64,000 nt of DNA. It comes from Podarcis vaucheri (lineage: Eukaryota). The stretch's first letter is position 1. Each line of letters opens with the position of its first letter. Positions 2,521 to 40,084 of this stretch are shown here, one piece after another. The DNA is taken from assembly GCA_965113315.1 (NCBI GenBank), contig OZ220382.1, one strand, 5' to 3'. The position numbers and the translations under genes are program-made. The notes under the pieces were generated by a model. That model worked only from the letters and a program-made list of their open reading frames with translations. It was not told where the DNA came from and searched no databases.

Positions 2521-5500
2521 TAATGATAATGATAATGATAATGATTATTATTATTATTATTTATTATTTATACCCATCTGGCTGAGTTTCCCCAGCCACT
2601 CTGGGCGGCTCCCAATCAGTGTTAAAAACAGTACAGCGTTACATATTAAAAACTTCCCTGAACAGGGCTGCCTTAAGATGTCTTCTGAATGTCAGGTAAT
2701 TATTTATCTCTTTGACATCTGATAGGAGGGCGTTCCACAGGGCGGGCGCCACTACCAAGAAGGCCCTCTGCCTGGTTCCCTGTAGCCTCACTTCTTGCAA
2801 TGAGGGAACCGCCAGAAGGCCCTCGACGCTGGATCTCAGTGTCCGGGCTGAACGATGGGGGTGGAGACGCTCCTTCAGGTATACAGGACCGAGGCCGTTT
2901 AGGGCTTTAAAGGTCAGCACCAACACTTTGAATCGTGCTCGGAAACGTACTGGGAGCCAATGCAGATCTCTCAGAACCGGTGTTATGTGGTCCCGGTGGC
3001 CACTCCCAGTCACCAGTCTAGCTGCCGCATTCTGGATTAATTGCAGTTTCCGGGTCACCTTCAAAGGTAGCCCCACGTAGAGCGCGTTGCAGTAGTCCAA
3101 GCGTGAGATAACTAGAGCATGCACCACTCTGGCGAGACAGTTCGCGGGCAGGTAGGGTCTTAGCCTGCGTACCAGGTGGAGCTGGTAGACAGCTGCCCTG
3201 GACACAGAGTTAACCTGCTCCTCCATGGACAGCTGTGAGTCCAAAATGACTCCCAGGCGGCGCACCTGGTCCTTCAGGGGCATAGTTACCCCATTCAAGA
3301 CCAGGGAATCCCCCACACCAACCCGCTCCCTGTCCCCCAAAAACAGTACTTCTGTCTTGTCAGGATTCAACCTCAATCTGTTAGCCGCCATCCATCCTCC
3401 AACCGCCTCCAGGCACTCACACAGGACCTTCACCGCCTTCACTGGTTCTGATTTAAAGGAGAGGTAGAGCTGGGTGTCATCTGCATACTGATGAACACCC
3501 AGTCCAAACCCCCTGATGATCTCTGCCAGCGGCTTCATATAGATATTAAAAAGCATGGAGGACAGAACCCAGAGGCACCCCACAAGTGAGAGCCCAGGGG
3601 TCTGAACACTCATCCCCCACCACCACTTTCTGGACACGGCCCAGGAGGAGGGAGCGGAACCACTGTATGACAGTGCCCCCAGCTCCCAGCCCCTCTAGAC
3701 GGTCCAGAAGGATGTTATGGTCGATGGTATCAAAGGCCGCTGAGAGATCCAGCAGAACTAGGAAACAGCTCTCACCTTTGTCCCTAGCCCGCCGGAGATC
3801 ATCAACCAGCGTGGCCAAGGCAGTTTCAGTCCCATGGTGAGGCCTGAATCCCGATTGGAAGGGATCCAAATGGTCCGTTTCCTCCAGGCGTGCTTGGAGC
3901 TGTTCAGCAACCACCCGCTCAATCACCTTGCCCAAGAATGGCAGATTTGATACTGGGCGATAGTTGGCCAAATTGGCCGGGTCTAAAGATTTTTTTTAAG
4001 AAGCGGTTTAATGACCGCCTCTTTCAGCGGGTCTGGGAAGGCTCCCTCACAGAGGGAAGCATTCACCACCCCGCAGAGCCCATCGCCCAGCCCTTCCCAG
4101 CTCGCTTTTATCAGCCAGGATGGGCAAGGATCAAGGAGACAGGTGGTCGGTTTCACTTGTCCAAGCAGCCTGTCCACATCCTTGGAGGTAACAGATTGGA
4201 ATTGATCCCATGTAACAGGACCAGACAGAACTCTAGCACTCTCCCGCCCTGGCCCTGCTCCCACGGTGGAGTCTACCTCCTTCTGAATCTGAGCGATTTT
4301 ATCTGCAAAAAACTTTGCAAAAGCATTGCAGGAGATCTTGGGGTCCCTACCAGGCCCCGGTGGTACAGGTGGTTCCGATAGATTGCGAACCACTTGAAAA
4401 AGTCTCCTGCTGCTGTTTTCTGCAGATGCAATGGAGGCGGCGAAGAAGGCCCTCTTCGCCGTCGCCATTGCCACTTGGTAGGCTCGACGTTGAGCTCTAA
4501 CCCGTGTCCGGTCTGATTCAGAATGAGTTTTCCGCCACCGGCGCTCTAGCTGTCTCAACAATTGTTTCATCACCCTCAGCTCCGGGGAAAACCACGGGGC
4601 TGTCCGGGCTCCATGCAATCGGAGAGGGTGCTTTGGAGCCAGACAGTCAACAGCCCTGGTTAACTCCGCATTCCAGCGGGCCACCAGGGAATCAGCTGAA
4701 AGGCCATCAACTTGGGATAAAGCATCCCCTACCACTCTCTGGAAGCCAATTGGATCCATTAAGTGGTGGGGGCGGACCATCCGAATCGGTCCCACCTCCC
4801 TGCAGAGGGGAAGGGTTGCGGAGAAGTCCAGTTGCACCAGGAAGTGATCTGACCATGGCACTTCTTTTGTTTCGCTTTTAGTTAGTGTCAGATCACCAAC
4901 ATCCATAGAGGTGAACACCAAGTCTAAGGTATGTCCATGGCTATGAGTTGGGCCAAACTTATTCAGGGACAGTCCCATGGAGGCCATGCTTTCCACGAAG
5001 TCCCGAGCGGCCCCTTGTAAGGTCGTGTCGGCATGGATGTTAAAATCCCCCAGGACAACCAAGCTAGGTGTCTCCAGGAGCATATCCGCCACGACCTGAA
5101 GCAGCTCGGGCAGGGAATCCTTGGTGCAGCGGGGAGGTCGGTACACCAGTAGGAATCCTGTACTGCCCCTATTGCCCAACTTCCAGAACATACACTCAGA
5201 AAACTGGGTCTTCCCAATAGGACGCCTGGTGCAGACTAATGACTTCCTAAAAATCACTGCAACCCCCCCTCCCCGCCCACATGACCTGGGTTACTATGCG
5301 TAAGAGAAACCTGGTGGGCAAGCAGCGGCAAGCACAGGCCCATCAGCTTCATCCAACCAGGTCTCTGTCACACATGCCAGGTCAAATCCTCCAATCAGGT
5401 CGTGGATGGCAGTGGTTTTATTCATCATTGACCTGGCATTGCACAGCAACACTTTCAGGTCATGTGGGTTTCCCTTGCTGATTACTGTATCCTTCCGGTC

Positions 5501-5990
5501 AGGACCAGACCTGGAGGCAGGGATAGTCCTCAAACAACGACTAAACCTGCCTCCTCGGTAATGACATGGTCTGGTCTTAGCATAACTCCTCCTCCTGCCT
5601 GTGATCACTGAGATCGGGTGTCCCAAAACATCCCTCCCTGTGGAACCTGCCCCACCCAATCTATTGGCTGAGGCCCACTCCCAGGCAGCCATGACCCTTC
5701 CCCTTAAAAAGCAAAATACAAACTATATAATAATTTAAAATAATAATAATAATAATAATAAAACAAAGCAAGAAACAATAGCGCTGACTAAATGCTTATC
5801 CCACCCCAAGCAAAAATAAAATAATGAAATAATATAATATTATAAAAAACAACAACCACCATTTAAGGTGCTGCAAATTAAAAGCAATTAAAACATGGAA
5901 ACATGGAAGCATTAAAACAATTGTGCTGCAAATTAAAAGCATTTAAACATGGAAACATGGAAGCAATTAAAACATGGAAGCATTTTTAAA
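2521..5990 (-). mobile_element. Near full-length L2-clade LINE (endonuclease + RT), disrupted by stops/frameshifts
   Basis: ORF pieces 5294-5692, 3983-5257, 3546-3971, 2639-3637: LLCNARS, VTETWL, LGDFNIH, WSDHFL (APE); NYRPVSNLPFLGK, LLDLSAAFDTIDH, QYADDTQLY (RT); 3' microsatellite tail at 2521-2570; tandem repeats at 5' end 5868-5990. Confidence 0.93.
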
Positions 5991-6042
5991 GATGAAATTG
6001 GGTACTTGGACAAAGTTGAACCAAAAGGCCAGAGCCTTAAAG

Positions 6043-6593
6043 CAGTGTTTCCCAACCGGTGTTCCGCGGCACACTACTGTGCCGTGAGACATTGGCTGGT
6101 GTGCCGTCGGAGGGAGGCGGGCGAGTCGGGCGGTGAGAGGCGGCGGCGGCGAGGATCCGCGTCGAGCCGGGGGTGGCTCCGCGGTGGTGGTGCCGAGCGG
6201 AGGGGCAGCGCGTGCAAAAGGGAGGAGTGCGAGACAGCGGAGGAGGAGGCCAGCATGTCCGGGCAGCAGCAGCAACAACAGCAGCAGCAACTCCCGGCGA
6301 CGGCTCCTCAAGCCCCGCCGCCGCCCCCTCCTCCACCCGCTATCGCCGCCACCACCACAACAGCTGCCGCCGCCTCAGTTGCCGCCGTCCCTCAGTCCCT
6401 CGCTCTGCTGCCTCCTCCCACCCCCAAAGCTTGGAGGTTCCCCGGCAAGGGGGAGGGGAAAAACTTTCACTTTCGTGCGTCCCTCCCGGCATGACGCTGC
6501 GCGCTGACGTCACGGGGCTGTAATGGTGGTGTGCCGCGAGATTTTTTTCCTTAAACAGGTGTGCCGTTGCCCAAAAAAGGTTGGGAAACACTG
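6043..6593. mobile_element. Non-autonomous hAT element (551 bp) with GC-rich gene-like cargo
   Basis: Perfect 15-bp TIR CAGTGTTTCCCAACC/GGTTGGGAAACACTG; exact 8-bp TSD CCTTAAAG at 6035-6042 and 6594-6601; repeated subterminal GTGCCG. Confidence 0.93.
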
Positions 6594-6601
6594 CCTTAAA
6601 G

Positions 6602-7485
6602 GAGTTGGGGCTAAAACTGATGTCATGGAACATAGCAGGCTGTCATTCAAGGCAGATTAATAGACAGCTGATGAACTATTTTGTGCAATTTGATATTATT
6701 CTGCTTCAAGAAACATGGCACAATGACTCTATAATGATTAACGGAAACAAATGTCACTCATTGACAACCACTCCCTCAATGAAAGGTGGTAGGGTCAGTG
6801 GGTGTCTAGCATGTTTCATCTCCACAAAGTTGAATGCAACTACAACAGCCATGATTCCATGTAACCCATTTACAACTGCTGTCTTGGTTGTAGTTTTGAA
6901 AGTATGTTTAATGCTGATTAATGTCTACATACCACCTTGTCAAAAAGTTTAAAAAAAACAACTACTGTAAATACTATATGGACAGACGTAGAGAATTATA
7001 TAGAATCCATGGAATCCCTATATCCTACCACAGTGTTTATCATTGCAGGGGATTTTAATGTACATATGGGAGTTAACGATGTAAATTTGTATAAGATCAG
7101 ATTCTGAAACCAGATATTTACTTAGCCGGAGGTACCTCCCGCCTGTCTAATTACATCATAGATGTAATTATTCAGAGCTTTGTTTAGCCCAAGTTGTAAG
7201 GTGGAGGGACTTGCTAATATTGAACAGCATGATAGAGGGAGATCAATCCGGAGAATATACCCACTTTACAAAGCATGGAGGCAGTGTGACAGATTATATT
7301 GGTGATCTCATGATTTGCATAAGTTTGTCATGGAGTTAAAGCTGGGCAATAATATTGAAAGCAATCATTTACCTCTAACAATGGTACTAGTAGCCCCAGT
7401 ATTTAACAATTCTTCCCCCAAAACTCAATTTATCTCTAATGCAAACTTAGGTGTGACTGCAGGCAATGGAATTAGGTGGACACCA
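6602..7485 (+). mobile_element. Degenerate APE endonuclease domain (ORF2 5' part) of RTE-X-like LINE
   Basis: LKLMSWNIAG, FDIILLQETW, LINVYIPP, IIAGDFN (about 7039-7059), GEYTHFTKHGGSVTDYI, ESNHLPL in the expected order across frameshifts. Confidence 0.85.
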
Positions 7486-8150
7486 GTACACTTAATGCTT
7501 AACTCGTTCCGAGGGTCCTTACATACCCCCAAAAGTCCACAACTTGAGGCACCGTTTCTACGCATGTGAAGTGAAACCCGGAATTATACAATGTGATTGT
7601 ACATGCAATAGCATATGGAAACTTGACCTTGTTCTTTTGAATGAACACTTCTGTTGATTAATGCTAACCTATGATTGCTTTTTTTCTATTCCAGTAATAA
7701 TTATTGCCATCAAAATTTGTTCGATGGAATGGCCAGGCTCATTGTCTAATTTTTCACCTGGATTTACTTTAACTCCTAGTCAAGCAAAATAATGCATGAC
7801 AAAAAGCAACAGTGGGTGCAGATACCTAATTATTTAATACTGTGGCCCCATCACTACTGTAAAAACCAGCTCATTTAAGTCATGATATAAAGCAGAAAAA
7901 TATTAACTGCAAACATGTCAAATACTCTTATGTGCCTTTCAGACATTCCTCACAAGTTGGACCACAGTCCTAGCATTGCAAGTTGTTTTAGTATCCTACC
8001 AGTGCATCAGCTTGTAGCAACAACTGTCTAGCTTCTTAAAGGGTAGTAGCTTATTAAATTTTAACCAAAGAACAGTCTGCATGATGACATGGGGAGTAGC
8101 ATTATAACTTTAGAATAAGCCTTATAAAGGAGACCACAGAAAATACCTAC

Positions 8151-13157: not shown

Positions 13158-14270
13158 TATATAAATTCAATAAAGAATAATATCAGTTGTCTCATTCTAC
13201 ATGATTTACTATACTGTATAAATGAAAGGAAAAATAGTATCAAACAATGTGATACACAGTTGTTAGGTGGTTTAGTGACATTTTATACAAATTCCAGCAA
13301 TCAAACCTTAGCCTGAGATCATAAGCCACTGCCAACTCCAGGCTTAGATGGAGCATTGGTCTGAAGACTCCTCAGAGACTCAGAGTGTGGTCTCTGGCCA
13401 ACAAAAGCTTATAGTGTAACAAGTATGTAAAATAGTCCTGTATCAGTGATTCCCAAACTTGAAAATTAATGAGTGTGTTGGTGGACCACTTAAAATAGTT
13501 TTTCTGCCCATTGCAGCAATTGTAACGCATTTGTGTTAGATGCCATATTCATTTTAATTTTATTTTTATTGCTTCTATTTTGATATGTTTGCTTCCTTTC
13601 ACTTGTTTTCCTGGCTCCTAATCTTCTCCACTCCTTTTAAATCTCTCCCTCCTGCTCTTCTGTATTCTTAATCCTCCCCACTCCTTTTAAATCACTTCCT
13701 CTTGTATAAGATCCTAATCCTCTTCATTTCTTTCAAGTCTCTCCCCTTGCCAGAGGATTGCTGGGTTCTCAGAATGAGCAGCTGCTGCACCCACTGTTCT
13801 TCACAGCCATGCTGTGGACCACCTGAGTGATGCTCATAGAACTCTAGCACTCAACTCTATTGTTTATGATGTCCCCTTGGAATACTCTGGGCCACTGTGA
13901 GAATATGTCTCCCAGCCCAGCTGCCCAGGACTGGTAAGGGCCCTGCTACTCTGATGTAAGCCTGCCAGAGCTCTCATGAACACGGAAATAGGGCCATGAG
14001 GTTATTTCATTGAGGGCCTCCCTCAAATCTAGAACCAGCCCTGCTAAGATCAGCCAGAGTTTGCACCAGAGTCCACTTCCTCTGTTTAGCACCTCAATGC
14101 CCAGCAGTCTCCTTGCCCGAGCTCAGAGCTGGCATTGAGGACTCCCAGACTGCTATTTCTGGGCAACTTCAGCATCCATGCCAAGGCGATTTGCTCCCCA
14201 TTTGTGAATGCTCTCTATACAGAGTATCACCTGGCACCTTCATTACATATCTTTAGATGCCAGGAATGTA

Positions 14271-38887: not shown

Positions 38888-39126
38888 CTGAAATTTTAAA
38901 GGAAAAGGACCACATATTTAAGATCTTTGAACTCGAAGGAAGCTTCAAGCATCACCTAGATAGTTCATGAGTAAGGGGGAAGCAGGACAGAATTCAGATC
39001 CCTACAACGTTAGTCTTCTCCAAATTAACCTGGCAAAGAATGATAGAAGGGCATAGCATCTGGGATCCTATGTACACTTACCTGGGAAGAAAGCTCACTG
39101 AACTGAGAGGGACTTGAATTCAAGTA

Positions 39127-39368
39127 CAGTGGTACCTCGGGTTATATACGCTTCAGGTTATATATGCTTCAGGTTACAGACTCTGCTAACCCAGAAATAG
39201 TGCTTCAGGTTAAGAACTTTGCTTCGGGATGAGAACAGAAATCGTGCTCCAGCGGTGCAGCAGCAGCAGGAGGCCCCATTAGCTAAAGTGGTGCTTCAGG
39301 TTAGGAACAGTTTCACGTTAAGTACGGACTTCCGGAACAAATTAAATACTTAGCCAGAGGTACCACTG
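39127..39368. mobile_element. Tc1/mariner (Tigger-like) MITE
   Basis: TA|CAGTGGTACCTC...GAGGTACCACTG|TA. Confidence 0.9.
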
Positions 39369-40084
39369 TAAATGAGTGCGAAACATGATATCTCAAAGTA
39401 TCCATGTTTACCATGCTTTTTTATGCACTTAAACTGGATTACAAAATACAACAAATTACAATAAAATAAGCACAACATATTACAGTTGTTACAACAGGCA
39501 GGAAAATTATTAGATAGTCCACTGAGGTCCATGGTCGTTTGGGAACCACTGGTTTAGAGTATACTTCGCGATGAAAAATGATCTGATTTGTCTGGAAATC
39601 CAAAGTAAATCCAAATAAAGATTTTTAGAGTGCTTACAAGAGATAAGAGATCTCAAAGGGAGGGTAATTCCACACGTATGAGGCAGCTACCAAGATGACC
39701 ATATGCATGTAGACAGTACTAAGTCATTTAGGTGGAGAACTGAGGAATTCACCGGGTTCTTTTCAGGGAGTGTGGGGGGAAAAAGAATTATTTTTCCCAT
39801 TTTAGCCCATAATTCCACCCACCCACTCTTAAAGGCAGATGATAGCAGCAGATGCTTTGGGCTAATTATACAATTCAGTAAATCTTCTGTGCAACTTTAA
39901 CAGCCTGCTTTGCATTATTGCTTTGGTGTTATCACCCACTTTTGCCCATACTATTTGAGAAGAAACAATTCTGCTACATTACATTGAAGTCATAAAAAAT
40001 AAGAGATGGGAACATCCTATACTTCAACACTCCAGTATGCCAATAATCAATACTCTGGTTGCAGTCTACCTTCCTATTTATTAC

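Follow-up and report, generated by a model that had tools for sequence, protein, structure and literature searches.

The sequence at 6043–6593 of the window (the whole 64-kb stretch of DNA that was analysed) is a non-autonomous, Charlie/SPIN-like hAT element that belongs to a very abundant family. The best explanation as a whole, to which we give a probability of roughly 0.6, is an abundant non-autonomous hAT subfamily whose middle part came from the CpG-island 5' end of a gene. The region 5800–6800 was compared, at a likeness of at least 90%, with the contigs of three DNA runs carrying three organism labels (X1, X2, and X3) and with raw reads from a single RNA run (X24). The features of the element and its flank, with the basis of each assignment, are the following.

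6035–6042, no strand: left copy of the target site duplication (TSD), CCTTAAAG (sequence match, NYYTARRN fit)
6043–6057, plus strand: left terminal inverted repeat (TIR), CAGTGTTTCCCAACC (exact pair with 6579–6593)
6043–6139, plus strand: left arm, family-wide (contig depth; TGTGCCG subterminal repeats)
6140–6460, plus strand: subfamily-specific GC-rich interior, or cargo (contig depth, loose ends, composition)
6255–6494, plus strand: ORF of 79 codons and a stop (ORF list)
6461–6593, plus strand: right arm, family-wide (contig depth; CRE and TGTGCCG repeats)
6505–6512: CRE palindrome, TGACGTCA, inside the right arm
6579–6593, minus strand: right TIR (exact pair with the left TIR)
6594–6601, no strand: right copy of the TSD, CCTTAAAG (sequence match; empty-site joint)
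6613–6952, plus strand: flank, N-terminal portion of the decayed endonuclease ORF of a LINE (match to Exo_endo_phos in Pfam)

Structure of the element

The element is bounded by a perfect 15-bp pair of TIRs, and their first letters, CAGTG, follow the hAT YARNG motif. When the window was searched with the 15-mer at up to two mismatches, where the chance expectation for CAGTGTTTCCCAACC was 0.10 matches, just two other, different hAT-like ends were found besides the pair. The 8-bp TSD is exact on both sides and agrees with NYYTARRN, the pattern given for the SPIN/hAT-N families of the anole (PMC3014272). The perfect TIRs and the exact TSD are present as the first-pass annotation had described them, and its assignment of the sequence to the hAT elements is supported by the CAGTG terminus, the TSD pattern, an empty-site contig, and the many copies with differing flanks.

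The two arms measure ~97 bp (left) and ~133 bp (right), ~230 bp together, and the specific interior measures ~320 bp. The heptamer TGTGCCG occurs six times in the window, and five of these lie within the arms, at 6067–6073 (minus strand), 6078–6084, and 6100–6106 (both plus strand) on the left and at 6530–6536 and 6560–6566 on the right. These repeats have the usual look of the subterminal transposase-binding repeats of hAT elements. Pfam detected no transposase domain in any ORF of the element, a phmmer search of 1.84 billion representatives gave no transposase-like match for the ORF, and Rfam gave no match over 5000–8000. The middle of the element resembles neither its arms nor any transposase. 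An element that carries no transposase must depend on a transposase supplied in trans for its cut-and-paste movement.

Copy abundance and family structure

The summed contig depth, which is not a true copy number and is used here as a ratio only, was ~456,000 at the left terminus and ~476,000 at the right terminus in X1, with 150–1,700 in the flanks. The depth of the ends therefore exceeds that of the flanks by a factor of about 1000, and the same shape of the profile was found in X2 and X3. Contigs with an exact match to the flank had depths of ~14 (X1) and ~13 (X2). Should these values be near the single-copy depth, the ends are present on the order of 10^4 times.

High depth was found in two arms, from 6043 to ~6139 and from ~6460/6480 to 6593. 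In X1, the left arm had a depth of 187k–456k, which dropped after 6139 to 73k and then to 41k, and the right arm had 280k–476k from 6480 on, equal to the termini. Over 6140–6445, the X1 depth was 27k–80k, or about 7–18% of the ends, and the corresponding share was 6–25% in X2 and 28–35% in X3. A dip at 6242–6309 is the CAG tract, which the depth program skipped. The high depth of the interior indicates that it forms the body of a subfamily whose copies number in the hundreds to thousands. The GC-rich interior is common to several related organisms (at least three labels) and is not private to one copy, which does not support the young element that had been proposed for this locus. The ~410 bp of CpG-dense interior described earlier is indeed CpG-dense, but just ~320 bp of it (6140 to ~6460) is specific to the subfamily, and the rest belongs to the family-wide arms.

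The interior took a larger share of the arm depth in X3 (organism C, about 30%) than in X1 (organism A, under 10%), at uncalibrated coverage, and the cargo-bearing subfamily may have been amplified to different extents in related species.

Loose contig ends cluster at 6460–6463 in all runs. Short forms in X3 join 6127 straight to 6573/6574, and the dominant alternative in the X24 RNA reads is an AT-rich interior whose junction with the right arm lies at 6521 (agreement 0.96 over 108 reads). The family is therefore one in which the arms are common and the interiors are of several kinds. Just beyond the TIRs, the X24 reads showed 111 to 188 loose ends of low agreement (0.59–0.60), which points to many different insertion sites. 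In ten X24 reads (joint 6594/6041), the right terminus of an element is followed, after no more than TCTAG, by the left terminus of a second one, so that members of the family sit end to end elsewhere in the genome. Other contigs follow the interior as far as 6240 (X1 and X3) or 6457 (X2) and then diverge, with 255 letters of diverging sequence in X3 and X2; they may be rearranged copies, another subfamily, or the source locus.

Insertion site and surrounding repeats

The repeat that received the hAT element is a LINE with an endonuclease ORF, and the insertion lies in its 5' region. The Exo_endo_phos match of the downstream flank had an E-value of 4.7e-05, slightly below the curated cut-off of Pfam. 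The flank had a depth of ~150–280 in X1 (summed contigs), which makes it a moderate repeat itself. In X1, a contig of depth 22 passes from 6033 directly to 6593, and nine letters at the joint fit both sides. This joint holds both flanks and a single CCTTAAAG; it is an empty site, and it confirms an insertion with target duplication. Because the flank is a LINE, the contig may represent either a paralogous LINE copy or an allele.

An AT-rich tandem repeat of AAACATGGAAGCATT-type units is found at 5876–5996, just upstream of the insertion. The contig depth over 5902–5969 was zero in X1 and X2 and ~30 in X3, so that the tandem tract varies among LINE copies or individuals. Further upstream, at 2639–5257 on the minus strand, two long ORFs matched Exo_endo_phos_2 (endonuclease-reverse transcriptase, E 2.8e-09) and RVT_1 (E 4e-11) in Pfam. 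This is a GC-rich CR1-type LINE, placed head-to-head with the LINE fragment that holds the hAT element.

Composition of the interior and its ORF

The whole element has a GC content of 66.6% and a CpG observed/expected ratio (o/e) of 0.87, while the ratio is 0.18 in each 500-bp flank and 0.29 in the whole window. This agrees with the earlier statement that the inserted DNA is unlike the LINE that it interrupts. The segment 6140–6455 (316 bp) has 72% GC and a CpG o/e of 0.78, above the thresholds for a CpG island (GC >50%, CpG o/e >0.6, length >200 bp), and the CpG o/e of the gene-5'-end-like interior ranges from 0.78 to 1.14.

Within the interior, 6140–6254 (115 bp) is G-rich, resembles a 5'UTR, and bears GGGCGG GC boxes; a C-rich, coding-like part comes next. 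The ORF at 6255–6494 starts with MSGQQQQQQQQQLPATAPQAPPPPPPPP, its ATG has a purine at −3, and its product contains MSGQ, Q9, P8, and T/A runs. The 5'UTR-like stretch, the ATG, and the 79-codon ORF are all present as the annotation described them. The Q, P, T, and A runs are written in mixed synonymous codons (CAG/CAA; CCG/CCC/CCT/CCA; ACC/ACA; GCT/GCC) and are not pure repeats. Lag-3 codon periodicity was not significant in the ORF (chi-square p 0.26), and the test was therefore not used as evidence for a coding origin. About 11 last codons and the stop lie inside the right arm. The ORF is probably a mere side product, with its stop codon supplied by the arm of the transposon, and it bears no sign of a protein product.

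Origin of the interior

An origin of the interior from the 5' end of a gene is plausible, judging from the GC boxes, the context of the ATG, and the mixed-codon Q/P/A runs. The product of mammalian RANBP9 starts with MSGQ followed by P and Q runs, and RANBP9 is a reasonable candidate for the source, which we put forward tentatively and at less than even odds. The expected human N-terminal letters gave no match in the literature searched. The N-terminus of RanBPM has been described as proline- and glutamine-rich (PMC5493780).

Protein searches with the ORF pointed to no source. In the word-indexed search, the 79-aa ORF had no relative at E ≤0.01 among proteins of 43–138 aa, and the same region within a 181-aa ORF had none at E ≤1 among proteins of 100–317 aa; the length window of this search (43–317 aa) leaves out full-length RANBP9. 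The phmmer search of the 1.84 billion representatives gave six low-identity matches, none of them RANBP9. Three of the six were RCC1-type repeat, tandem-repeat, and Cys-rich repeat proteins, which are unrelated and were rejected as relatives. The PDB chains gave one chance match (E 4.3) and no RANBP9, the ESM Atlas gave no usable match, and Pfam gave only sub-threshold LCE matches. These blank searches are weak evidence because the query is of low complexity and HMMER discounts Q/P/A runs.

If the middle part was captured, it would have been gained in a single event, probably through a template switch while the gap left by an excision was repaired, a route modelled on proposals for Ds and Pack-type elements. 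The source would be the CpG-island 5' end of a host gene, that is, a 5'UTR together with ~55 initial codons for an N-terminus rich in Q, P, and A. The composite of the arms and the captured middle would then have been amplified by ordinary transposition. A fuller version, in which the CpG-island leader and first codons of a housekeeping gene (RANBP9 or similar) was captured a single time and then reached ~1000 or more copies across several lizard species, with some copies possibly becoming new promoters or methylation targets, appears doubtful to us as a complete statement.

The interior might never have been genic, and consist of low-complexity (GGC)n, (CAG)n, and (CCG)n grown within the element or of anonymous GC-rich DNA, with the ATG and the ORF as accidents of composition. 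Such an origin would agree with the blank protein searches, with the result of the periodicity test, with an ORF that has its stop in the arm and does not extend to a conserved domain, and with the partial complementarity of the G-rich and C-rich halves (inverted pairs I3, I5, and I7; fold z −3.0). It does not account well for the use of mixed synonymous codons in all four kinds of run, for a UTR-like leader with GC boxes before an ATG with a purine at −3, or for MSGQ followed by Q and P runs, which resembles the start of RANBP9, and we regard it as unlikely. We consider it quite unlikely that the 5' end of another Q/P/A-rich gene was captured in place of RANBP9, or that the interior was assembled from two sources that meet near 6240. 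No other named gene is pointed to by the data, and the link to RANBP9 consists of the N-terminal letters. The contigs of X1 and X3 that leave the interior at 6240 continue in a different GC-rich sequence (255 letters in X3), a divergence that hints at a second locus or at a subfamily sharing the leader only; rearranged or truncated copies would explain these loose ends equally well.

In most cases, non-autonomous hAT families have arisen from autonomous ones by deletion (PMC3014272), and no sharp landmark in the sequence separates the arms from the interior. In principle, the interior could then come from the 5' end of an autonomous hAT of this family, with its promoter, leader, and first transposase codons. 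This is very improbable, since no transposase or BED/hAT-dimerisation match was found in Pfam or among the 1.84 billion representatives, the interior occurs in just 7–35% of the family members, and the ORF ends after 79 codons.

Ageing and CpG decay of the copy

Over ~483 covered bases, no fewer than 16 sites distinguish the copy at 6043–6593 from the majority of the family: 6077, 6108, 6134, 6174, 6201, 6213, 6228, 6335, 6365, 6458, 6491, 6536, 6550, 6551, 6558, and 6566. Seven of the 16 listed differences are losses of CpG to TpG or CpA (6134, 6174, 6213, 6228, 6335, 6365, and 6491), and at these sites nearly all contigs keep C or G where this copy has T or A. Within the cargo, all six differences fall on consensus CpGs, and five of the six are CpG-to-TpG/CpA transitions. 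This pattern means that the copy has undergone methylation-type decay since its insertion and is not brand new; it is still CpG-rich because it began as a very dense island. The first-pass annotation took the CpGs to be undecayed and concluded that the insertion was recent or unmethylated, a view that was rejected on account of these seven losses. The element at 6043–6593 is an ordinary, moderately aged copy of its family in a LINE remnant.

CRE palindrome and transcription

The CRE palindrome described by the annotation is present, at 6505–6512, but it is not part of the cargo. Its depth equals that of the termini, which assigns it to the transposon backbone, and its interpretation as captured promoter DNA was rejected since the depth profile puts it in the family-wide right arm.

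In X24, 901 reads matched the region; 851 of them lay only partly on 5800–6800, and 20 matched at a likeness of at least 99%. No pile-up of molecule starts or ends was seen in this one RNA run, and both orientations occurred. The reads stem from many copies embedded in other transcripts, and nothing in X24 points to a transcript from the copy at 6043–6593.

Comparison with known systems

The capture of gene fragments or other extraneous DNA by hAT elements is already a known kind of event, and the single locus described here is ordinary. In plants, cut-and-paste transposons are well known to capture gene fragments; in animals, such capture is considered rare and nearly always single-copy (PMC8277862). 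Tan et al. 2021 reported 370 animal Pack-TIRs in 100 genomes, mostly of the hAT type, of which four were multicopy (PMC8277862). One example is hAT-N8_XT of the frog, which carries 291 bp of the CAPSL 5'UTR and is found on three chromosomes (PMC8277862). The same survey found none in the lizard genome, where just 77 TIR elements were annotated (PMC8277862). Our element resembles the animal Pack-hATs in being a short non-autonomous hAT with intact TIRs, 8-bp TSDs, and a few hundred bp of 5'UTR-like, apparently non-transposon DNA. As in Pack-hATs, its copies have different TSDs, so the composite has transposed (PMC8277862). The Pack-TIRs of that survey are defined by an identified parental copy (PMC8277862). 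For our element, no TIR-free parental copy was seen in the contigs and reads, in which a single one would not stand out among about 10^3 copies. Compared with the multicopy cases of the survey, the cargo is present here at hundreds to thousands of copies (PMC8277862).

If the gene origin is true, the unusual part is how far the cargo has been amplified: its hundreds to thousands of copies, spread over several lizards, are far above the handful known for any animal Pack-TIR. It would also mean that CpG-island-like DNA bearing GC boxes and a CRE has been scattered through introns and repeats, and the family would offer a system for studying the methylation, decay, and promoter gain of dispersed CpG-island fragments.

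Novick et al. 2011 described the non-autonomous hAT families SPIN_NA, hAT-N1 to hAT-N4, and hAT-N3_AC in Anolis carolinensis (PMC3014272). The non-autonomous hAT and hobo families of the anole incorporate extraneous DNA, and several families have nothing but their TIRs in common with an autonomous element and contain "extraneous" DNA (PMC3014272). Our element is similar to the anole hAT-N families in its NYYTARRN TSD and in its length, which is about 0.3–0.8 kb in those families (PMC3014272). The anole TIRs CAGTGGTTCCCAACCT and CAGTGKTTCTCAACCT are close to CAGTGTTTCCCAACC, one or two letters apart, and CAGTGTTTCCCAACC is identical to the TIR of none of the families listed in that report, which describes no gene-derived interior for its anole families (PMC3014272).

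Common ends with variable cargo, a bias to GC-rich gene 5' ends, and the amplification of some composites are also features of the plant Pack-MULEs and Pack-TYPE elements (PMC8903248). These differ from our element in that they are Mutator and not hAT elements, and the host here is a vertebrate (PMC8903248).

The first 14 nt of our element (6043–6056) are the same as CAGTGTTTCCCAAC, the TIR given for the insect MITE hAT2_NA of Manduca sexta, and the TSD of hAT2_NA is likewise 8 bp (PMC3845634). The TIR of hAT2_NA is CGGTGTTTCCCAAC in Bombyx, Rhodnius, and Heliconius (PMC3845634). The hosts of hAT2_NA are insects, and the identity of CAGTGTTTCCCAAC, seen in a comparison of the TIRs, is a possible hint of horizontal transfer.

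Elsewhere in the window, solitary ends at 13444–13458 (plus strand) and 39537–39551 (minus strand) match the TIR of the anole hAT-HT3, CAGTGRTTCCCAAA (PMC3014272, Table 1); neither has a partner end within two mismatches. A Tc1/mariner-type MITE is located at 39126–39372, with inverted ends that begin with CAGTGGTACCTC and finish with GAGGTACCACTG and with TA on both sides.
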